NCBI RefSeq assembly: GCF_902459465.1
Contig: NC_047069.1
Coordinates: 12,834,001-12,898,000, forward strand
Length of the DNA: 64,000 nt
Direction: 5' to 3'
From: Asterias rubens
Taxonomy: Eukaryota
A program made the translations under genes and the position numbers. Every line of letters begins with the position of its first letter. Positions within the stretch are counted from its first letter, which is position 1. The notes beneath the pieces were generated by a model. That model was not told the DNA's origin. It worked only from the letters and a program-made list of their open reading frames with translations, and ran no database searches. Below, piece after piece: positions 3,437 to 22,900 of this stretch.

Positions 3437-6400
3437 TTAACTGAGCTCACTTAAAGCACAGCTGAAGCAGAAGGGTTTGGTGCAGTGGCCTGGTCCCTCA
3501 CACATATAGGAAGAGCTGACATTGCAACCACTAGAACGCAGGGGACTAGACGCTAACGATCCAACATTGCCACTCTCGTCAAACTTTTTCATCGGAGACG
3601 CAATCAACCTCCTCGCTACTGTCTTGGCAGGCGACCCTCTCTGGTCAACTTTGGTTGAACTCCGCACAGATTTGGTGTCCGACTGATATGCCCTTGTTGG
3701 GGAGTTTGCGTACATTTTCCTGCTTTTTTCCACACGGCCTGTGCGTGGCGGTGAAGCACTGTGGAGATTTCTGGCGATGCTCTTCGTCGATTTTGGAGAG
3801 GAGATAATCTGGCCGCACCGGATGATGGTTTTATGTTTGGTTTTGAAGCTTCCTACGTGGTTTCTTTTACTGACTTCGGGAACGGCCACTGGTACTTCCG
3901 CAGGGTCACTGTCATATGTGTCCATGATGCTGTGGTTGGACACCAGGGAGAGAAATTTAGCAGAGTCACCTGAAGAATCACTCTCCTCGTCCGAGAAGTC
4001 CAGCGTTTGTTCCGCTCGGACAACGAGCTTCCTCTCTCCTCGGATTAGAGTGGTATCTGAATTATTCTTCCCTTGTTTTGACACTGTTCTGTTTGGCGCA
4101 AAAGTCTTGTTTGCTAAAACTTTCTCCTTCTTTGAATGAAAAGGACTTGACTGTCCAAACTCTCCATCATTTTCTGAATTTCTAAGATCTTTATGATATC
4201 TCTCTGATTGTCGTTGATGCGTGTACCGTTCTAGCTGCGTCTTGGTATCGACATCAAAAACTCTGTCATGCTCTTGAGACTTTCGCGAAAGATGACTTGC
4301 TCTTGATTTATCTTTGCCCGAGATGCTGTTATCTCTATGGTCATTATAGCTCATGGGAGCTGGTTTGCCGTAAGAATGAGCAGTGCGTCGACTGCGGAAG
4401 TGACTTGGACCTGGCGATGAATCATCTGCTGTTAGTGAGTAAGGATCGACGTCAACTTCCATCTCATCCTCGGAATCGTCATCAAAATCTCTGATGGTCA
4501 TATGGGTTTGGTTAAATTCTTCTGAGGCTCGCTGCCTATCATTCAATCTCAAATGTTCAGCCATAAGGCTTGTCTTCGGATGACCCTCGGAGAGCTTTTT
4601 CTGTTTTTTCCTGACAGCCTGTTCCAAAGATGTCTTTTTATCAGAACCTTTAGGGAGTTGGCCTTTAACGGGTCTGTTGGTTGCTTGGGGCAAAGCTAGG
4701 GGCGAAGCCAGAGACATGCGATTCAACGGGGAGGAGAGCGTGGAGGGTGACCTTTGAACTGTAGGGGTCAAAATACTCCTCTTGACCTTTGAGGTCTTTG
4801 AGGACAACGGGGTCGTCTTTGAGTCGTCTTGAACATCTTCAGCACTGTTTTCCTTCAGATGCCTGGACTTCTGCATTGACTTTTTGCCAGTGTTGTTTGC
4901 AGTCCTTATTGGTAATTGTCTAGTGGTTGAAGGTTTTTGCTCACTGTGTTTTCTCCTTGCGTCCTGTTTTGTTATTGAAGCCGGAGTTCTCCGGCAGTCC
5001 AATTTTGGATTGACTGAATTCAAATCAGTGTGTAGGTCTGGGGTGTCAGTCGACCGTGAAGAGCGATGATGATGAGCTGTTCGTCTGATTTGAGAATCTG
5101 TCACCCTGAGGTCGGCTCCACAAACTTCAGAATGCTTGGCGTGTTGCTCTGGTACATTTAACAATTCATTGCTGTTGCCAGGAATTTGTCTCGTGGAGAT
5201 GTGAACCCCTTTGCACACAGATTTGTCTTTTCTAGTAGGAGCCATAGTCTTAAGTTCCCTCGTACCTTCCTTCAAATGTCGATTACTTCCCTGTACTTCA
5301 GGCCTAGCAATATTGGTTGCTTCAACTACTTCTCTCTGGTGTTTACAATGACTTGCAATTTCAACAACCGTTGGTGTCTTTGGCGTCCTTGCAATTTGGT
5401 TTGGTCCATCATCAGAAGTTTCACTTCGCTGATCATCATCACTCTCGGAATCAAACCTTAAACAGTCTAATGTCATCTCAGAAGCAAAGTCATTGCTCTG
5501 AATGATGATCTCCTTTGCTGATTGACTTCTGTGACCTGTACTTTTCTCTTCTTTTGACAATGAGGGACTCTGGAGGCGCAGTAACGCATTCGTTAGTGGA
5601 CCTGGAGAGGGCGCTCCAGAGCCTTCTCGCCTTACTCTCCGTCGTGGTGTCAAATCCAAACTATCAAAATTGATACCTGGTATGATCAGTGGCTTCGGCG
5701 ATCGGAATATCTCCATGATTTCCTGAGTGTTAAACCGAGGGGAAGCAAGGCTCGTCTTTGAGTTTACCGTTACGACTTTCCGCTGCCGGGCTCTAGGGGT
5801 GATGCCCGATACATCGCAGTTACTGGGACTCCTAATGGAATCTTGACGGTTGTGATTCCTTGTTGTTGGTGTGTTTGATTTCAGTGAATTATGAGCAGGT
5901 CTTCTGTTGGCGTCATCATATTTGATGGGAGTTCTGAATTCTGAGCTCCTTTCAGACTTTGGGGACTTGCTTTGTTCGTCGTCACTTCTAACTTCAGGCT
6001 TAGACTGAGCACTAAAGGGCACCACTCCGAGGCACATCTCTCCCTGCCCGTCAAGGGGTAACTCAAGTTCTCTGTGCCGATCCAAATCCAGTTGTGGTTT
6101 CCTCTTGGCTGTTCCAAGTGCAGAGGGTTGAATCTCACTAAGCATAGTGCTGTTGCAAATTGCCTCAAAGGGCGGCTGGGATTTTTTGCCCCTCGAGTCT
6201 CTGTTCTGGTTCACCCTCGAGAGCAGATTGGAAGGGCGGAAAAGTTGTTGGTTAGAATGCAGGTTACCAGCTAAGATAGTGCTGCAGTCTGTGTAGTCGG
6301 AGTCGGTGCTGGTGATTGTAAGTCCATCTAAGAGCCTCTCATCCTGCTGAGGAAAATCTTCATTTTTACTGCTAGTATTACCCGCACCTGTTATCCGATT

Positions 6401-9400
6401 CAATTTTGAAGTTCTTTTTGGTGTGGTCCTGGACTGGAGTGTCGACCACGCGGAGATGGATCCACTTGTTGCTTCACTGCTCTCAATAGTTCCCGCGCTT
6501 GCCTCGTCCTCACTCGACGAGTCCATCTCATCAACACCATCACCATCGCTAAAGCTGTCAGCAAGAATCGACTGCATCTTGAATAAGAATCGGTTCCGCT
6601 CCTCAAGGATGGAAGGAAGTTCATCTTTGAATTCATACGGATCCTCCTCCTCCTCCTCCTCCTCATCTTCGTCGTTCTCACTAAGTTCCTTAATCATCTC
6701 TTGCTCTTTTTTCTCTTTTACTCGATACTCATCCTCGAACCTCTTGGAGAGATTTCCACGAGCTCTCTGGTGAGCGCGATGGATGGGGTCACTTGTGGTG
6801 TCTTGAGGTCTTTGGCGTTGCGTCAGTGTTTTGAGAGAGGATTTTGTTGGGGTGGAGATCGGGCCGCTGCAGTCGGACTCCACATCCTCATTGCCTGAAT
6901 CCTCTGAATGTGAATTACGACTCATCAAATCATCTGTAAAAGGAACAACAAAAACAAATTACAGACCAGAATATTCATAGTGTTTGGCCCAATTTCATAG
7001 AGCTGTTTAAAGGCACTGAACACCTTTTGTAATTGTCAAAGACCGGTATTCTCACTTGGTGTATCCCATCATAAACATAAAATAACAAATCTGGACTCAA
7101 CCTACATAGTTGTAAGAGAACAGTGAAAGAAAACAGACTCTTGTTGCACAAATTTGTGTGCTTTCAGATGCCTGATAAAAGGCTTCAAGCCTGAATTTTT
7201 TTAATATTTCAGTGAGAAATTACCTTTTTTCGAAAACTTTTTCACAATGTTATATACTATAAATAAAACAGCTCTCCGTAATTTGTTACCGGGTAAGCTT
7301 TTATGCTACTAAATATTTTGATTCAGTAATTACCATTAATGTCCAGTGCCTTTAAGCACAAAAAGTAACTAAGCACAGAACGACGGTACAAGCCAACTTC
7401 TGTGGTGCTTGCTTTATTTTATCCAAGGAAACTTGACCGGTAAATGAGGAATCACAAAATCCTGACATCAAGAAAAATTCCTGAGCAAGTTACTTATAAT
7501 TGGTTTGGCCAGGACGTATTAACTCTCAAAATAAGGCAAAACTAGAGTGTGGATTTGGGCAGGTGAACAATAAAAATTCCCCCTCCCCCCCTCACAAAAA
7601 AAATAATAATACAAATTGACCAGGAGAACCAACTTACCATCAACTCTTTGTACAGCTTTTGCTCTCTCTTCTTTGTTGACATGTTTGGGATTCTGGACAA
7701 AGGAAATATATAAATTGGGACATTAGAAAGCTTTTGTCAAATATCAAGTGAAATTGTATGATGCTGGCTTTCATATCATTATCTACATTTGACCTGTTTG
7801 ATGACTTGGGTCTGTCAAAGTGAACCTACAAGAAGATTTGTCTAATTTGTTCTAAATCTTTCATACTCGACAGACTTGAAAGACACATGTATTTATCACT
7901 CTAAAAAAAGGCAATATACATTAAATTTCCTTTACCCACAAATCTTTGAGGTACGAAGGCAAACAATTGTTCAAGATCTCGGACTTCATCTCCTCAGTGT
8001 GTTCACAACTGTACCGTTCGGTGCTCTGGTATTTTTCAACTCCAATTTAAAGAGAATGTGTATAAGGGGGAACAAATCTGATCTTTCAACCACAGTATGA
8101 GCTTGGAAATGGAGGGTGATCATTGACAAAACTAAAGCTGTCTAACAAATCCTCTGGTTGCTCATGCTCAAGTATTTCTTTTGTTTATCTTGGTTGACTA
8201 AAGTTGCCACACAACAGAATTTAAAGATATTTTTTCAGACTCTCATAGTCAATTATTTTTTCCAAAAAGATATTGCACAATGCGGTAGCCTATTATTACC
8301 CATTTGAAAAACACAATACCACAGGGATTGCCCGGTCATAAGCTTACTGGCCCAAAGCTAAAATCTAGGGCCTAGGGCCTGTGGTCTAGTGTTGACTTCA
8401 AGCCCTGGTAAAACACTTGCAAAGCCCTGTTTATTACTATTACATGGTGGAGGATTCATGTGTCTGTGTACAGTACCTGGTGGTAGGTATAGTTGACTAA
8501 CGTCTCCGTCCCTGATGTGTCTTCACTCTCGCTGAGGCGGCTGCCAAAAGCCGAGTCCGTACTGTCCTTAGTTGAGTCCCAAGGGGTAGCTACGAAGAAC
8601 AAAATGAAAAAAATTGCAAAACAAAGCGGCAAATCCTACTTTTCTGAACAAAATTCAGGCTAGTATTTTATCCTTGGACAAGAAGTAGGAACATCTTTTT
8701 TTCGCAAGGGCTGACCTACATGTTGAATAAGGAGTTGGGTTTAATGGACTTTGCAGGCTAATTAATCACAATTTTTTGTATTGTTTCAAGGCAAAATATT
8801 TGACAATCAGACTATAAATAGGAAGAATACCATGCCTGGCAACAATTGTGGATAGTTTTTCCAGTTTTTTCAAGGTTACCCTCCTGTGACTAAGCCCCCC
8901 TCCCCCTAATTTTTCTAAAATAATAACATGAATAATAATTGTTACCTTTGTTAGGGGAGACTTTATCTGCTGCTAGTTTGATTGTTCCGATCCGTATCTT
9001 TCCTGTCCTGCCAATGGAACCTGCATGAATAAAAAATAAAAAACAGTAAGCAACAATCAATAAAAGTTAATTTTGCAATCAAATTTGCAAATGGTACACA
9101 TACATGTATTAACTCATTCTGTGTCTTGGCTCTGAGGTCTACTAGAGCATGGGGACTCAAGATCTGCTGGCCCCTAGACATCGGGGGTGTGAGGTTCAAA
9201 TCTTGGGCATGACTCCTGTGTCTTTGAGCAACCACTTAACCATAAATTGCTTCTCTTAACACAGTATATCAATCAATAGGAACCTACAAGGGCTGAGATT
9301 GAAATTATGTTGGATTAACACAAGCAGCTTGATGTTGGATGGTACCCAAGAAATTGAGAAAGTTTGAGGATTGAATCAAGTATGTAAGATGAACAAGGAT

Positions 9401-10782
9401 AATGTTGTGAATCGCCTTTACCTACAATCCCAGGAAAAAAACATTGGTACACATCACCCTTCCAAGTACACCACTCCTTAGTTTATCCATATTGTAATGG
9501 CAAAGCCGATTGGCTGGTAAGAGGTGAGGGGGAAGCGCCAGTTAAGCTTCGCTGTGGAGCTTCCGCTGCTGGTCGCCCCCTGCTAAGCCATTGGGTAAAC
9601 TGTTTGTCAATAACTTTGTTGGGGGTGTCAGTCAGAAGCCATTCGACCTGTACTGTTCTCCATGGTTGTACTAGCCAGAGATCACCCGAGTTTCCTGGGA
9701 AGCAGCAGTAGGGCCTGGATTGTAATAACCAGTCACTTTTTAATATGCAGTTCTGCCCTCTACACTGATTTATTATGTTACCTCGATCCTCTACCACTGT
9801 CATGTTGCTGAGATCCAGAACGTCGGATTCAACAAACGGGCGGTCATACTGCAAAGGGGAAGGTTACAAACAAAAACAACAAGAGTTGTTGTTGAATTTT
9901 GTTTTACCATTTGATTTTGAATTTGTGACACTTTCGCTTAATAAGCAAAAAATTAGATCCAATCATAATGCATCAAACAGGAACAGAACGCTTTTCGACC
10001 ACATTTGTAGAAACCTTTTGAAACTACTTATTAATTTATTTTAATGACCAATGATAAATACATTATAAATGCCTGGTATTTCATCTTTGACATATTGAGA
10101 AGCCAGGCCCAGGCAAAAAGCATGTAAATCAATTAATAGCACATCATATCTCTCCAATCAAGTTAAGTTAAACCATGGAATGGAGCAATAAGGCTTGAAA
10201 TAAAATTGGATAACTTTCCGTATGGCGCCACCACTTTTTCACTCATTTTTACAAAAAGGGATATCTCATTGAGGTAAATTAGAATGATATTTTTTCATAT
10301 CAAATGAAAAAGTGGTGGCGCCATACGGAAACTTTTCCATAAAATTATTTAATGCTTAAATTAAAAGTTAAGTTAAACAAATATTTAAACAAAAGAAAAG
10401 CGAATAGTTTTTAATTTTATAATAAAAAAAAAATTCAATTTTCTGAAAATTTACACAAGCAGCAAATCAAGTAAGAGGCAACTTGGTCGGGGTGACTTTG
10501 TAGGGGACGAGGACCGGGAACGATTTTGAAATAGGGTGATTTTGTGTGTGCGGGGGCCGGGGCGACTTCGCAAGGGGGGGCCACTGACCGAAACCACTTG
10601 TTATCGGTAATGACTTTGTATTCATTTTTATTTGCATGAATTATTAATTTAAAGCGAGGGAAGTTTGAAAAGCATACCTTGTCAATAATTGCCTCCAAAT
10701 TCGTCCGAAACCTTGTGGAAATTCGCTCTTTATCTCTAAGATAACTGCTAGTCTTCGTCTCATTTTGCGTCAAGAATGCCAT
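3437..10782 (-). CDS. Scm3/HJURP-like CENP-A chaperone candidate, 6 coding exons, 1303 aa, largely disordered
   Basis: Exons (minus) 10782-10678, 9848-9782, 9020-8946, 8589-8477, 7692-7638, 6933-3437. All junctions are GT-AG with compatible phases and total 3912 nt. The spliced N-terminus MAFLTQNETKTSSYLRDKERISTRFRTNLEAIIDK|YDRPFVESDVLDLSNMTVVEDR|GSIG fits the Scm3 pattern (RF..LE.I..KY..PF...D..DL....V..D.G). Exon 6 is the 1163-aa ORF of the track and ends in CEGPGHCTKPFCFSC. Gene model confidence is high; family assignment is moderately high. Confidence 0.8.
7011..7351. mobile_element. MITE family A copy nested in a family D MITE
   Basis: GAGCTGT-TTAA[AGGCACTGAACAC...GTCCAGTGCCT]TTAA-GCACAAAAAG splits the family D sequence GAGCTGCTTAAGCA. 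Confidence 0.85.
10208..10338. mobile_element. ~130-bp MITE with 8-bp TSD (ATAAAATT), GG termini (Merlin-like)
   Basis: TIRs GGATAACTTTCCGTATGGCGCCACCACTTTTTCA / TGAAAAAGTGGTGGCGCCATACGGAAACTTTTCC; ATAAAATT at 10200-10207 and 10339-10346. Confidence 0.9.
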
Positions 10783-13900: not shown

Positions 13901-16900
13901 TTCGATCCAAACCGGACCTTCTTCAGAGGCATAAAATAAGTACAAACAAATACATGTATCCATTTATAGAAGAAGAGAGGGGAAAGGGATTAAGGGAAGG
14001 ATCATATTATAATAATAAGATTACATGTTGTCTTGCAATTACATTTCACTGCCACGCAATAGATTTTTCAATATTCGGTAGACATCTAAGTTCTTATTAA
14101 AGAACTGGTTATTAACTTCTACTTTCACTTTAGTGGATTGAAGGGACTTCCCGCCATAAACTTCACTATTGCAGAGTGAGTTCTAAAAGGCAGTGGACAC
14201 TATTGGTAATTGTCAAAGACTTGCCTTCATAGCTGGTGTATCTCGACATATGCATAAAATAACAACCCTGTGAAAATTTGAGCTCAATCGGTCATCGAAG
14301 TTGCGAGATAATAATGAAAGAAAAATAATCCTTGTCACACGAAGTTGTGTGCGTTCAGATGGTTGATTTCGAGACCTCAAGTTCTAAATCTGAGGTCTCG
14401 AAATCAAATTCGTGGAAAATTACTTCTTTCTCGAAAACTATGGCACTTCAGAGGGAGCCGTTATTCACAATGTTTTATACCGTCAACCTCTCCCCATTAC
14501 TCGTCATCAAGAAAGGTTTTGTGCCAATAATTATTTTGAGTAATTACCAGTAGTGTCCACTGCCTTTAATTGGTCTCAACGTTTGGACTAGCTTGCACTA
14601 GTTATCATCAGGAGACTTGCTGAATTACACTTTGTTTGTGACTTCCTAGATGTGGAGATGGAACGTTACGCTGATGAGGCTGATGTTGTGATCGTAGGAG
14701 GCGGCCCAGCCGGGATGGCCGCTGCCATCAAACTCAAACAACTGAGTCTAGAAAAAGGAACTGAACTCAGGGTGTGTCTGGTGGAGAAGGCTGCTGAAAT
14801 AGGTAAGCGCTAAGACATGGGGCCAATTTCATAGAGCTGCTTAAGCAGAAAATATTCCTTAACAATTGTCTGCTTAGCAGATATAAGCAGGATACCAGTC
14901 ACAAAATGTGTTTGTGGCATGGTAGTTTAGTTGGTAACCATGTTCTGGTTAGCACAATTTTGTTGTGCTTAGCACAATTTTGTTGTGCTTAGCTATTGTT
15001 TTTGCTGAAAGCAGTTCTATGAAGTTGGGCCCTGTGTTGTAGCTAGACTAATTTTAGTGGTGGGGTCCAGATCCACCAAGGGCAAATCAGATCAACAAAA
15101 TTATTTGTGTTTAGATATATGGGCCATCATTGCTGAAGTGCAATCTGGGGGAAGTCTTTGCTGGGCGGCACAGTGTATATTTTTTGTTAGAATGCTGGGA
15201 AAAAATGTTTTGTCCTGGGTAGGCCCATCTTGCACTGCCTACCACGCTGATTAAGACCAACAAAGTCATTGTGGATGTTTTGTGAGATTAAAACCGAGTG
15301 TTTTTTTAAGTTGTCATCAGTTTTAAAATTTAGTTAAACAATGCTGTTGCTAACTCCTCCGTCGTGATGTGACAAACGAAACCACCGAGCCAACCTGGAT
15401 AACTAACAAGTTGCTGGTGTATTTTTTTCTTTTCAGGTGGTCACACACTCTCTGGAGCGTGCGTTGAGCCCCGGGTATTTGATGAGCTTATACCTGACTG
15501 GAAGGAGAAAGGCTTGCCCCTTCTCACCCCTGTAAAGGAGGACAAATTTGGGATCCTGACGGAGAAGGGACGAATTCCAATTCCAATTTTTAAAGGTACA
15601 TAAACACAAAGATTTTTTTTAAGGGCAATTTCAAAGTTACTCACAAAAATGAGAAATTCTCCTATGCATAACACATAATTGTGCATTGTCAAAATAATCT
15701 TAGCATTTGCCCATACCTGTAGGTATTACTGATTTTACACTTTGACATTAACTTTGAGCTATGTATTGATGTAGAAAGGATTCGCTATGTGTTTTGTGTT
15801 GTCGTTTAGCCTTCGAGAAAGGCTCTGCTAGTGTCGAATCATCAGGCCAGAACCTTTTTTTACATTTATGTCGTAAGTCTTTTAGGTTGGTAAGCAGATT
15901 GCAACAGCTATTTATGCTTCTGTGTACTTAAGATTCATTTCTTGTTATTTATCTCCCTTTAAGGGCTTCCAATGTACAACCATGGCAATTACATTGTGAG
16001 GTTGGGTAACGTTGTACGCTGGCTCGGTGAATACGCAGAAGAGCTGGGAGTTGAGATATATCCTGGCTACCCAGCAAGTGAGGTTAGTAGAGGAAGAGTT
16101 AAGTTTTTTGGTTTATAACAAATGATAATAGAGCGTCAATGGCGCTACATGGAGATTTTCTGCTGAAATTGTGTGCCCTTGTATGTGTTTTTTTATGCGT
16201 ATTTGTAACATTGTTATTGCTGATTGTGTATTTAATATTTGTATATTTTTACATTTGTACATTTTTAAATTTCAGTTGTGGTCTTTAGCTGGAGAGGAAA
16301 GCCTCTAGACAGTAACTGTGTTTCTTTTAGGCAATCCGTTGGGCTCAAGATGGTTGTTTTCCTCTGTATTTTAATTGCTCATTGCTATATCTTGTAATGT
16401 TTTCACCTAATTAATGTGCGTAATATTGTACTTTTTATCTACCCGCGAAAATTAAGTTAATATAAATGTGAAATGTGTTCTGAAGGCCATTTCAGTAAGC
16501 AACTCTTTTGATGCAACATTAGACAAGTGCAGACACTGACATTTACTGTCAAAGATATAACAAATCATTTGCTTGCTGAAATGGTACAGGGACTCTGTAA
16601 TCTTTGGTTATAACTCGCTTTTATACTAGTGTAAACACAACCCAAGAAGGGTAGTTCTGTTAGGATCCTACCTCACTCCAACAAAATCCAACACGATATG
16701 ATAACTGAACACCCAAACTGTTGGACTGTATGCAGGCATGAAATTCTTCCTACATTTACTTTAGTCTGTTTCTGATTTGTTGCCCTTATTTTTTAATCAG
16801 CAAAGAGCGTCATTAACAAGCTGGGAAAAAAAACATTAAAGCCTACACCATATGAACATATAGGTCAGCCTTGGTGCTCTAAATGTTTGACAAAATATCA

Positions 16901-19900
16901 TGCCTGTATTATGTAGGTTTGCATAATCCATGTAATCGGCTTATTACAGTCCTCAGTTTAACAGAATAAAATGTGGGCACATACCAAACCAAACCAGTTT
17001 GACTTACCATTTCTGTTGTGATTTTGTGTAGCAATTGCCCCAAATAAACCATTTAAACAATGTGATAAACTTACCTGCAGATTCTGTATCATGAAGATGG
17101 AAGTGTTAAAGGCATAGCAACCAGCGATGTGGGAATTGCAAAGGATGGCTCACCAAAGGTAAGAAGAGACTCAAGTTTTTTCACTTCCTTCCCACAAAGT
17201 TTTATTGTTGATTTTTGTTTTGTCGTCAGCCTGAACTGGTAAAAAGTTCATCATGTTTTATGAAGCCCTTAATTTTATCCTTGAGAAGGCTCATTGAATT
17301 CCACAAAGGAATTCTTCCATGGAACTCTGCTCATCATACCCCAACTGCTTTTTATTGTTATTAAATGGTTGAATCCTTGCATTTTCAGGACACATTTGAG
17401 AGAGGAATGGAGCTCCATGCAAAATGTACAATCTTCGCCGAGGGATGCCATGGTCATCTAGGCAAGGAACTGTACAAGAAGTTTGACCTCAGGAAGGACT
17501 GTCAACCACAGACATACGCCATCGGTCTGAAAGAGGTCAGGCGGAACACTTTTATCATTTAAATTCTTGGAAAAAAACAAAGCCTCACCCCCAAAATAAA
17601 TTAACTAAATAAAAATAAAACAGCTCCAGATTCATCAACCAGACAGCTTTTTCTGCTGATCTGATACCTTTGGTTTCCGGAACTGTTTAATTGCTTTCAT
17701 TCTATATAAATGTAGATGTATACAATAAAAGTAAGAGGTGAAATTTTCATTCCAAAAGGTGGTCAGGTTTCCGAGAAATCACCTAAGTGGTTATGTCAAC
17801 AGAGTAAGAATAATCTCCAATAGGAATACACAATCTTAAAACCTAAATGTCACTAGTTTCTCAGATTCAAATTTTGGGGCATAACAACTTAAATCCTTTC
17901 ACATAACCATATTACTTTAAAGTGTTTTCTAGGGAATGCTGCTGTAGGCTTCTAAATATTTATCTCCATTAACTTTCAGAGTGATTACCAAGCGTATACC
18001 TTCCCTTAAACTGTGTCTGGTTATCATGAAATAATGCAATTTTTTCCAAATTGATCTTGGATTAAAGGTATGGGAAGTTGATCCAAGCCAGCACCATCCA
18101 GGGCGAGTGGAACACACCGTGGGTTGGCCACTGGTAAGTTGAGTTTAGCAAGTTGGCCTAAACAAAGAAACAAGTGATTTATTTGATCATCAAACAAGCC
18201 TTACTAGCTTCTGTAGATGTCCTAGGGCGACCTTGCTACGTTTCCCATGGATGGCCAGCGTAACCAGTTGTAGAGTTGCAATACAATACAACACAATACA
18301 CCAACACGACCGCCCCTGATGTTAGTAAGGCATACACAAGGCGGACACAAGTTCGAAATTGGCATCCCAAACTTTATTTTGGTCACAACAAAATTGCGTT
18401 AAATAATAATGATGTTTGAAGATATTAAATAACTTGATTTCTGTGTTTTTTCCCGTTCAGAAACTTGACACATACGGTGGCTCATTCCTCTACCACTTGG
18501 ATGAGGGCTCCCCAACAGTTGTCGTTGGGTTTGTCGTTTGTCTAGATTACAAAAACCCATACATCAGTCCATTCAAAGAGCTACAGAGATTCAAGCAGCA
18601 TCCGTCCATCAGGCCCACGTTTGCAGGAGGCACAAGGATAGCTTATGGTGCAAGGGCCCTCAATGAGGGCGGTGTACAGGTAAATAAAGACATCGGAGCA
18701 TGATTTCATAAAGCTGTCAGTAATGCTTAGAACGGTTTCTTTGCTAAGTGAAAATGAGTGGGCACCAGTCACAACAACCTTTAGCTAAGCAAGTTTTTTT
18801 CTGTGCTGAAAATTTTGTGTCCGCTTTAAGGCACAGATTTTATCGTGTCATCAAAACTTCTTACAGGGCCAAAATTTCTGAGCTATGAAGTAAAACAAAA
18901 AAACACAAAGTAAGCACAAGACTATAATTGCTTACCAGAAATATCTTACCAGCCAAACTTTAACCTTTAGTGTATTGTTGCTGACTGAATCCCTGCTTAT
19001 TTTTTCCTCAGCAGAAATTCATTGAGCACAATTTTTCTGCTCGAGCACCTCTTTGAAAATTGAGCCCATCGTTGTCCAGAATTTATTAGTCTTTGGGAAC
19101 TCGACCACCTTGATATGGTTGAAGTCTGTTAAGATTGCTGTATGATTTATGACATGAGTTGTGACATGAGTTGTGATGTTGTGCAGTAGGACCCGATTTA
19201 TCAATTTTCACCCCATTTATCAAATTTTGTTTGTTTGTATAATTGTGTCTTGCATTATGGTGCATTATTGTTGTCTTTGATCCATTGTTCTTTGCAAACT
19301 GTACTGTATTTGTTTCCAATTTCTAAATATTATAGTTTGTAATGTGCCATTTACCATTTTGCATATGAACCATTATTTTATTACTTTTTCTCTGTGTTTA
19401 TTTAAATTCTTTACTGCCTTTGTACTTTTCCATGTAATTTCTTTTTCATTGTACCTGAGTTTTAGCTTTGTTTTTTTCAATTGGCCTAGATGTATTTCCT
19501 AAAACTTAACTGCTCCTACAAATATAACGCTGTGTTGTCCGTGCTGTGTGATTTGTTTTTAAATCCGAAGTGTAACATTAAGTATGACTCTTTATCTGAC
19601 ACAAGGGAATTTTCAGGCAATCAATCATATTCATACCAAACAATTATAAAGGTCATACTCATTTCATTTTAGAGGGTGAGCTCGAGAAAATTGACTAAAG
19701 TGAGGTTTGAACATGGGACCTCTGGATAAATGTGTCGGCGCTCTACCAACTGAGTGCCAAGCCCTAATACCCAGCCAGTTATCTGTTGCAGCAGCCTTAT
19801 CTGTGTGGACAAGTGCGTTCCACTATGTCATGCACTTTGTGCATAGTGCAATGATTATTACCGCGATCGGATATTACGAGCTCCTGATATAACGAGGAAT

Positions 19901-22900
19901 ACTGGCCAGCCCGGCGGACCTCATAATAAATAAGAGTCGATTGTATTTTACAAAACCAAAGCTGGCACATTAGTCCAAAGCTTACAGGTTCAAAACCGCT
20001 GTAGTCAATTTTTCTTTGTTCAACCATATACATGTAATATTATTATTTACTCAATCAGTTTCCATTATGATTAATTACTTAATTCATTTTTTAAATACTT
20101 TTAGAAAAAAAAATCTATTTTGCAAGCAAAGTATTCATTATGAATGCTTGACAAAAAAATGACCACCTATGATAAGACACTTATATGCTCTTTGTTTCCT
20201 TCATGATTTCAGTCCATTCCGAAGCTAGCTTTCCCCGGAGGCATGTTAATTGGATGCAGCCCGGGCTTCATGAACGTGCCTAAGCTTAAAGGTACCCATA
20301 ATGCCATGAAAAGCGGCATGATCGCAGCGGAGACGCTGTTTGAAAAGCTCACTCAGGAAAATCCCTCGTCGGAAACAGCAGGTAATGTCTTCTCTTTTTT
20401 TTTCTCACTTAATATTAAAGGCACTGGACACTATTGGTAATTACTCAAAATAATTTTTAGCATTTACATTAACTTGTTATTGAGAAATGGAGAGCTGTTG
20501 ATAGTATAAAGCATTGTTTCAGACAACAAATTTTTTGTGAACTTAATTCAGAATTTGGTTCGGCACGACTCTGGAGCGCCTGTCTGAAAAGGGTGTTAAT
20601 CAGAAATATCAATATTTATAAACCAACTTTTTCTTGTTCCGCCCTTTCTCTGTTATGCAGGGTTATACATTGAAGACTATGAGCCCAAGCTGAAGGATAG
20701 TTGGTTGTGGAAGGAGCTGTACTCAATAAGAAACATCAGACCAGCGTTCTATAATCCTCTAGGAGTCTACGGGTCTATGCTGTATGCGGGCATCTTTTAC
20801 CTCCTAGGAAGAGGGAAGGAACCATGGACACTGAAGCATCATGGTAAGCTGAGCTCAAAATTAACACTGGACCCCAGGCCTGAGGCCAGTGATGTAGCAT
20901 TGGGCCAGAAGACTTACGACAGTACAAGTTTGGCGATCTTGTGTTTTTGAAAAATAATAACCTCACTGCATTTTTAACATACAAATATCTTTCAATTCTG
21001 TTGAGAATTTAACTTTACACATAAGACAAATGAGATCAATCTTATAATAGATGTTGTTTGCATCGGGATAAGGAATATTAATTTTGGTTGTTACACATAC
21101 ACCGATGTTTGTTAGCACTGTTTACTCAGTACTTTCCCGAGTCCTGGGAACAAAATATCTCGGGCATATTACTCGGGTGGGATTCGAACCATAGACCCTT
21201 GCAATTGCAATCTTATCTTAGTGCTTGTTCCAAACACAGCTTCAATGTAGAACTGTGTAGATAGTGTCTCATTTTGGTTCCAGTCTCTGGTCCAGTTAAA
21301 GTTCTGAGCTACAAGCCCTGCAGTCTTGTGCATATTCCCCCCCAATTCGAGCCCAGGTATAATAATAATGGCTTCTTAAACAGCGCTCAGGTCCGTCACG
21401 CAGTGACGCTCATGGCGCTCCAACATTATTACTCCTGGTCACAAGGCCTTAACTCACTCCTTAAACCATCTCAGCTTCCTGGGGAGTATACATCCTTGTG
21501 CAACAAATGCGCTACTCGGCTAAATCAATCACAAGAACCATCTCTGCCCTCACAGGATACCCATTTACCCCTGGGTGGAGAGAAGCAATTGTAGTGAAGT
21601 GTCTTGCTCAGGGACACAAGTGTCACGACCGTGATTCGAACCCACACTCTGCTGAACAGAATCACCAGAGCTTGAATTCTGCGCTCTTCTCCGCTCGGCC
21701 ACGACACCCCATATAATATGTATTATGGGAAGATAACATTTGTAAATTAGTGATTTTGTATGTTTGGGTATTCAGTCTCTTCATACAATAAAGGCCTCCA
21801 TACCCGTTGTTACATATTGCCTTGGTGCCTCTGAAATGGTCCAGTAGGAATTTGCTTACAGGACATATTTTCTGACCTACATCACTCTATGAAATTATAA
21901 TATTTTTTTTTTTGACTTCCTTTTTTGGTTTTTTTGGGCATCGGCTTACCAAAGCATATCTCACAAGAAATGTGTTATCGTGCAGGGGTCCTTTCTCAAA
22001 AAGTTAGGACTAATCCTTGGAGATATTAAAAATGTATGGCGAGTGCTAAGTTAGGACGAGTAACACGTCTTATACTCGATGTAAGACTAGTCTTTACTTT
22101 TTGTGAAATCTACCCCACGTGACATTGCCTCTTGCGTGACATTGCCTCTTGCAGAAGTACACAGCCGCAATCATGGGTACACTTTTTGTTATAAAGACCC
22201 CAATTGAACAGTGTTGAGTAACTCTTTGCAGATCTTGTATACTTGATGTATGACTAGTCTTTACTTTTTGTGAAATCCACCCAACTCAACATTGCCTCAG
22301 GCAGGACATTGCCTGTTGCAGAAGTACACAGCCGCAATCATGGGTACACTTTTTGTAAATAGAAAGACCCCAATTGAACAGTGTTGAGTAACTCTTTGCA
22401 GATCTTGTATTCAACAAACTCCATCATTTTTGACACAGCGATTGCATATACATGTACATGTACATGTACATGTACATGTACATTAAGATAACTGCTACAC
22501 AGTGGTTTTCAAACTGTTGTTCATATTAGGACAACACAAAATTGTGTACACATGATAATGACTGTGCACATTTTGTGCTAACTTACAAAATAATCAAAAG
22601 ACCTTATGCATTTACGTCATCCAGCCTCCATCTTAGAGGTAAAACGATGATGAAACTATTGTACACGTAGCGCACATGTTTGGCCAATGAACGGCAATTT
22701 TTTTACCTCTAGGTGAGGGCGCCTTACTGGTATGACATCATGTGCATAAGGTCTATTCTTCACATTTAAACAAATGCATTCCTCTCCCTCTCACAGGTAA
22801 GGACAACGAGTATTTAAAACCAGCGGCGGAGTGTACCCCCATCGAGTACCCCAAGCCAGACAATGAGGTGAGCTTTGACCTCCTCAGCTCCGTGGCTCTC

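Follow-up and report, generated by a model that had tools for sequence, protein, structure and literature searches.

A cysteine-rich C-terminal tail of starfish HJURP as a candidate zinc-knuckle module of the Scm3/HJURP family

How HJURP is brought to centromeres is known for flies and for vertebrates, where Mis18-binding repeats and CENP-C are involved; for most other animals it is not. The stretch of DNA analyzed here (the window), 64,000 nucleotides of contig NC_047069.1 from the starfish Asterias rubens, carries on its minus strand a gene whose product begins with a Scm3 domain and ends in four closely spaced cysteines. What is this terminal Cys4 tail? Judged from sequence, it is a family-specific terminal module of Scm3/HJURP proteins, an assignment which follows from its extreme C-terminal position, its conservation, its co-occurrence with the Scm3 domain and its single genomic copy. 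It is considered with moderate confidence that the tail is a short family-specific zinc knuckle which corresponds, in animals, to the fungal Scm3 CYS domain, and that it represents the targeting end of the protein.

The Cys4 tail and the gene that carries it

The original prediction placed a C-terminal motif C-x5-C-x4-C-x2-C at the end of a Scm3-like protein. The motif was confirmed at positions 3437-3502 of the minus strand, where the protein reads CEGPGHCTKPFCFSCALSELS and then stops. This stretch is the end of an open frame of 1163 codons (3437-6928). The tail comprises the following features.

3440-3550, minus strand: conserved tail of 37 residues (1267-1303), SSPLR..GC..SSSY followed by the Cys4 core and ALSELS
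3524-3526, minus strand: fifth cysteine, C1275, eight residues upstream of the core
3458-3502, minus strand: Cys4 core C-E-G-P-G-H-C-T-K-P-F-C-F-S-C (residues 1283-1297)
3500-3502, 3482-3484, 3467-3469 and 3458-3460, minus strand: codons of the four cysteines, read from the sequence
3437-3439, minus strand: stop codon, seven residues after the last cysteine

After the core the protein ends with A-L-S-E-L-S. Five of its 16 cysteines lie within the last 29 residues (expectation about 0.002 over the whole protein). In an alignment of four starfish sequences (Asterias, Patiria, Acanthaster) the tail has 30 invariant columns out of 38. No other window of 30 residues in the protein is conserved as well as the last one, where 25 of 30 positions are invariant; the Scm3 domain has 17 of 30, and the protein as a whole 32%. 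Identity over the last 37 residues amounts to 89% with Patiria and 84% with Acanthaster, compared with 41% and 36%, respectively, over the remainder of the protein. The original prediction had asked whether the motif is conserved in related species; in these three genera it is. In a six-frame profile search of the 418-Mb genome the motif was found once. The clustering expectation, the conservation of the tail and its single genomic occurrence indicate that the cysteine cluster is more than chance. An accidental cluster in a fast-evolving disordered tail, which only the short length of the motif could favor, is refuted by this conservation and by the recurrence of the motif at the C-terminus of independent Scm3 genes (see below), and its probability is regarded as negligible.

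To determine the distribution of the tail among known proteins, a set of 1.84 billion representatives was searched at a threshold of E<0.001 with a profile built from the tails of the four starfish sequences. Nine matches were obtained, three of which are serine-rich noise and six real. In all six the motif is located at the very C-terminus of a Ser/Lys-rich protein. They include two starfish representatives, P0004 (883 aa), P0007 (582 aa), P0010 (1157 aa) and P0009 (95 aa), whose cluster contains isoform X2 of Strongylocentrotus purpuratus LOC757268 (P0011, 401 aa). The aligned members have the invariant core C-[EK]-G-P-G-x-C-x-K-x-[FI]-C-F-x-C-A. The fifth cysteine, C1275, is conserved in starfish and perhaps in P0010, and is not conserved in other family members.

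No known domain or structure corresponds to the tail in the collections searched. Pfam has no family on it at E<=10 (nor on any of the 13 motif members described below), a profile search of PDB with the motif gave nothing at E<=10, and ESM Atlas gave no usable match. A sequence homology search with the tail region reached starfish only, owing to word and length limits, and nothing scored in such a search with sea-urchin P0011. The CCHC zinc knuckle (PF00098) resembles the tail in its length of about 14-15 residues, its four ligands and a CxxC pair. However, order and spacing are reversed (C-x2-C-x4-H-x4-C versus C-x5-C-x4-C-x2-C) and the tail is devoid of histidine. PF00098 was therefore rejected for the tail, to which it gave no Pfam match at E<=10.

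The gene ending in this tail occupies positions 10782-3437 of the minus strand. Its six exons have GT..AG borders and join in frame into a protein of 1303 aa.

10678-10782, minus strand: exon 1, with the start codon and the helix that makes up the first half of the Scm3 domain; its last residues are ...EAIIDK
9782-9848, minus strand: exon 2 (67 nt), with the other half of the Scm3 domain, Y-DRPF...VVEDRG
8946-9020, minus strand: exon 3, junctions matching those of the RefSeq orthologue P0001
8477-8589, minus strand: exon 4, junctions matching those of P0001
7638-7692, minus strand: exon 5, junctions matching those of P0001
3437-6933, minus strand: exon 6, the last and largest, of about 1165 codons, rich in Ser and Lys and of low complexity

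The model agrees at every junction with P0001, a RefSeq protein of Asterias amurensis, and the identity between the two is 94%. The long disordered linker of the original prediction was retained and its length of about 1200 residues corrected: about 1220 residues separate the Scm3 domain from the C-terminal tail in a protein of 1303 aa encoded by six exons. The Scm3 domain is split over exons 1 and 2, with the break between K and Y of the KY motif. Exon 2 alone gives a weak match to Pfam PF10384 (E=0.0064), and its segment is identical in P0001. The domain core RFRTNLEA...IRIGT is letter-identical between the window protein and P0001; the Pfam-matched stretch differs at 2-3 residues. The complete domain scores 33.6 bits in P0001 and 37.3 bits in the Patiria orthologue P0002, with a Pfam cut-off of 24.3 bits. 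The N-terminus of the Patiria protein matches human HJURP in PDB (chain 3r45_C, E=0.0047), and Patiria miniata XP_038057064.1 has been named echinoderm HJURP (PMC13322267, 2026). Membership in the Scm3/HJURP family (PF10384) is thus indicated by an N-terminal domain above the Pfam cut-off in the orthologues, a single gene copy and an orthologue named in the literature. Based on the gene model, the Scm3 scores of the orthologues, the 3r45_C match and this naming, the product of the window gene is identified by sequence comparison as starfish HJURP.

A PF10384 search of the starfish's own genome gave no match, since an intron splits the domain. No Pfam family was found on the 1163-aa frame of exon 6 at E<=1, and HJURP_C or HJURP_mid matches were absent at E<=1 from both the 1163-aa exon and the full orthologues.

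The disordered middle of starfish HJURP contains islands of conservation at residues 81-120, 231-270, 531-570 and 951-980, with 20-23 of 30 positions invariant among the three genera. One island, NTQEIMEIFRSPKPLIIPG, is also recognizable in protein P0004. These islands are candidate short linear motifs for partners.

The motif and the Scm3 domain in metagenomic eukaryotes

A degenerate DNA pattern for the core C-x-GPG-x-C-x-K-x-x-CF-x-C was used to scan prokaryotic genomes, viral contigs and metagenome contigs. It had no matches in 596 Gb of prokaryotic genomes, none in viral contigs and eight in metagenome contigs. Seven of the eight matches are in frame and lie 1-9 codons ahead of a stop. 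Contig L010 was rejected as a true motif, since a stop interrupts the motif and the contig looks bacterial.

The whole gene is present on the contig in three lineages (L014/L012, L011 and L016; L012 is a near-identical copy of part of L014), and in all three a Scm3 domain is encoded upstream on the same strand. In L014 the open reading frame (ORF) 318-1145 scores 41.4 bits against Pfam Scm3 and is joined by an 85-nt GT..AG intron to an exon of 21 codons, which starts one codon before the first cysteine. In a variant contig of L014, six of the nine listed differences, namely one 2-nt deletion and five substitutions, fall within the proposed intron, and this concentration fits a non-coding intron. 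RNA support for the splice was not obtained from metatranscriptome contigs, which cover the neighboring TAF11 gene only. L011 (27% G+C) has the ORF 647-1174, scoring 40.4 bits against the same cut-off of 24.3 bits, with an intron before the Cys4 exon in the same position and phase as in L014. Both encode short proteins of about 270-300 aa with Scm3 at one end and Cys4 at the other.

The Scm3 domain of L016 is split and was recognized (23.3 bits, E=2.7e-6) by a custom domain model, for which four Scm3 sequences were used, including two from starfish. The split is as in starfish: one exon ends in ...K, and the following 67-nt exon starts with Y-N-H-A-F and ends in phase 1 after D-Y. GT..AG introns connect the Scm3 domain to the last exon, which ends in the Cys4 motif.

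The metagenomes that contain L014 are from peat, and those that contain L011 are from wastewater or bioreactors; therefore, these sources are not echinoderms. Since Scm3 is a single-copy gene, co-occurrence of the motif with it by chance is practically excluded. Co-occurrence with PF10384, by which the original prediction was to be judged, was thus found in the starfish orthologues and in L014 and L011 by Pfam, and in L016 by the custom model. The further claim that the tail would independently support Scm3 orthology and a two-ended architecture was borne out as well, by three unrelated metagenomic eukaryotes detected through the motif alone.

Alignment A4 combines 13 family members, metagenome matches included. 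The residues C, GPG, C, K, C-F and C do not vary among the 13, being imposed by the search pattern in the metagenome members. One to nine residues of variable sequence stand after the last cysteine. The consensus of the module is C-x-G-P-G-x-C-x-K-x-x-C-F-x-C, then 1-9 residues and a stop.

Some further features of these genes were recorded. The 67-nt second Scm3 exon has the same length, intron positions and phases in starfish (9782-10782) and in L016:104-375, a eukaryote of 57% G+C. This common structure means that either the gene structure is old or the L016 contig comes from an animal. A phase-1 intron is located exactly one codon before the first cysteine in two unrelated short Scm3 genes (L014:1142-1226 and, approximately, L011:1153-1246). 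The Cys4 module is consequently an exon of its own in L014 and L011, and is fused to the large last exon in starfish. On contig JAAUYA010100257.1 (L013:3975-4353) the Cys4-bearing terminal segment occurs twice in tandem, about 330 bp apart. A TAF11 gene on the minus strand (L014:1402-1797), with human TAF11 as its sole PDB match, lies tail-to-tail with the short Scm3 gene of L014, with approximately a few hundred bases at most between the 3' ends. The source of L014 is a very compact eukaryotic genome from peat.

A proposed zinc knuckle and probable counterpart of the fungal CYS domain

The following mechanism is proposed for the tail. One zinc ion would be chelated by the four invariant cysteines, of which the first two flank a GPG turn and the last two form a terminal CxxC. 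Around this metal a segment of about 15 residues would fold as a mini knuckle, following a disordered linker about 1200 residues long. The prediction of a single metal site is drawn from the pattern, namely four invariant cysteines within 15 residues, the Gly-Pro-Gly turn and the terminal CxxC. The N-terminal Scm3 domain would hold CENP-A/H4, and the tail would dock the chaperone at centromeres by contacting chromatin/DNA, the Mis18 complex or CENP-C. It would thereby do the job of the C-terminal R1/R2 repeats of vertebrate HJURP.

Four closely spaced cysteines can also ligate a 2Fe-2S or 4Fe-4S cluster, and the tail could carry such a cluster or serve as a redox switch instead of forming a structural zinc site. 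This is improbable, as the 15-residue span, the GPG turn and the terminal CxxC resemble compact zinc knuckles. Moreover, the CYS domain of fission yeast reportedly binds zinc in vitro and is said to be essential for Scm3 localization.

According to another explanation, the tail does not bind metal. It would be a degron, a lipidation signal or a short linear motif for docking, and its cysteines would be incidental. Prenylation signals and C-degrons typically lie at the very C-terminus, as the tail does. However, a CaaX, CC or CXC prenylation box was rejected: no member ends in one, the window protein stops seven residues after its last cysteine, and among the members 1 to 9 variable residues stand after it. 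The four cysteines and GPG are invariant and the intervening positions variable, as in a metal-binding scaffold, and the protein is nuclear by function. A non-metal role is hence very improbable, more so than an iron-sulfur site.

The closest known analog of the proposed zinc knuckle is found in fungi. The original prediction named a cysteine-rich motif linked to centromere targeting in fungal Scm3, and for fission yeast this agrees with the literature, which connects a cysteine-rich domain of Scm3 with the targeting of centromeres (Folco et al. 2024, Nucleic Acids Res 52:1688, cited in PMC13322267). As in the fungal protein, the cysteine cluster of the window protein lies in the C-terminal part, far from the N-terminal CENP-A-binding domain. 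In starfish, L014, L011 and L016, as in fungi, it is C-terminal to the Scm3 domain in the same polypeptide. The difference is that the CYS domain was described for fungal Scm3, whereas here the cluster belongs to an echinoderm HJURP of 1303 aa and follows about 1200 disordered residues. By analogy, the proposed Cys4 knuckle is probably the animal counterpart of the fungal CYS domain.

Alternatively, the tail could be a conserved terminal module of animal or other non-fungal Scm3/HJURP proteins that is not homologous to the fungal CYS domain, the cluster being independent or much remodelled and having a similar or a different role. The putative equivalence with the CYS domain is argued from position, cysteine content and co-occurrence, not from an alignment. 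No named fungal protein was found at E<0.001 in the exhaustive starfish-tail profile search of 1.84 billion representatives. L016 has both intron positions of the starfish 67-nt Scm3 exon, so at least that contig may belong to an animal or a close relative. On the other hand, a starfish-only profile has little power for diverged copies, and the sea-urchin copy itself scored only 35.7 bits. In size and layout, the two short proteins of L014 and L011 (about 270-300 aa) match small Scm3 proteins of the fungal type. The nearest ESM Atlas clusters of their ORFs are fungal Scm3 families, with scores of 0.84-0.85, which are below 0.9 and thus serve as leads only. Non-homology is for these reasons considered unlikely, and is a stronger competitor than the iron-sulfur and non-metal explanations.

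Several further points weigh against the assignment of the tail to a zinc knuckle equivalent to the CYS domain. The three short Scm3 proteins may be animal or protist rather than fungal, and the invariant residues of the metagenome matches were imposed by the search pattern. Among the protein matches of the profile search from outside starfish, no Scm3 domain was seen by Pfam in the gene models, which are single large ORFs or short isoforms; sea-urchin isoform P0011 is one of those without it. The 18 kb upstream of P0010 gave no Scm3 exon, although small and distant 5' exons would escape such a search, and the contig of P0007 is only 2 kb long. An AlphaFold2 model of the 38-residue tail from 13 sequences has a mean pLDDT of 52.8, a confidence too low to speak for or against a metal site. 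Zinc binding by the tail, its targeting to centromeres and its docking partner are predictions.

The proposed knuckle can also be compared with the targeting ends of animal chaperones. The original prediction stated that mammalian HJURP uses different C-terminal repeats. This holds for vertebrates according to Pan et al. (2019, PMC6731319), in which the C-terminal repeats of HJURP (HCTD/R1-R2) bind the Mis18 complex. According to PMC13322267, echinoderms are without the vertebrate R1/R2 repeats, and the same paper reports nothing conserved outside the scm3 domain in metazoan HJURP. The vertebrate repeats and the starfish tail both form a C-terminal end in the same chaperone family, and the tail is a candidate for docking on the licensing machinery. 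They differ in having no sequence similarity and in size (regions of about 100 residues versus a 15-residue Cys4 knuckle). Drosophila CAL1, with its C-terminal CENP-C-binding domain, and Caenorhabditis NEFR-1, with its conserved C-terminal motif, share the layout of the starfish protein, in which a long divergent linker connects the scm3 domain at the N-terminus to a short conserved end (PMC13322267). Their ends are reported there to be lineage-specific and are not cysteine clusters, whereas the Cys4 motif spans several distant lineages.

Surroundings of the gene and significance of the tail

On the plus strand of the window, a gene resembling ETFDH (electron-transfer flavoprotein-ubiquinone oxidoreductase, 14652-20950) is located head-to-head with HJURP, the start codons being about 3.9 kb apart. 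Its exon ORFs open with a Rossmann motif. A SINE-like repeat containing GGCAGTGGACACTATTGGTAATT is present in three copies (approximately 2490-2860, 7000-7370 and 14200-14560) in both orientations; the copies are found in the 3' flank and introns of HJURP and upstream of ETFDH. An imperfect inverted repeat, AGGCCGGTTTAAAGTCGG ... CCGACTATAAACCGGCCT, at about 1331-1460 in the 3' flank of HJURP, may represent the ends of a small transposable element.

The HJURP gene is already known, as is the cysteine-rich domain of fungal Scm3. A Cys4 tail in animals was not found described in the literature searched. It is possible, with slightly less than even likelihood, that centromere targeting through a terminal Cys4 knuckle is the ancestral state of Scm3/HJURP and predates the split of animals and fungi. 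The knuckle would have been kept in echinoderms and several other animal or protist lineages and replaced in vertebrates by the R1/R2 repeats and in flies by the CENP-C-binding domain. If so, Scm3/HJURP proteins have two conserved ends in common, not one, and a single module of 15 residues would explain how centromeres are found in many animals without the vertebrate Mis18-binding repeats. If the alignment with fungal proteins fails, the tail would be a new conserved module of the Scm3/HJURP family.

The tail is better conserved than the scm3 domain and could serve as a second diagnostic mark for fast-evolving HJURP orthologues. In starfish oocytes, an established CENP-A system, it provides a small mutable handle for centromere targeting, and it represents a possible evolutionary link from the fungal CYS domain to the chaperones of animals.

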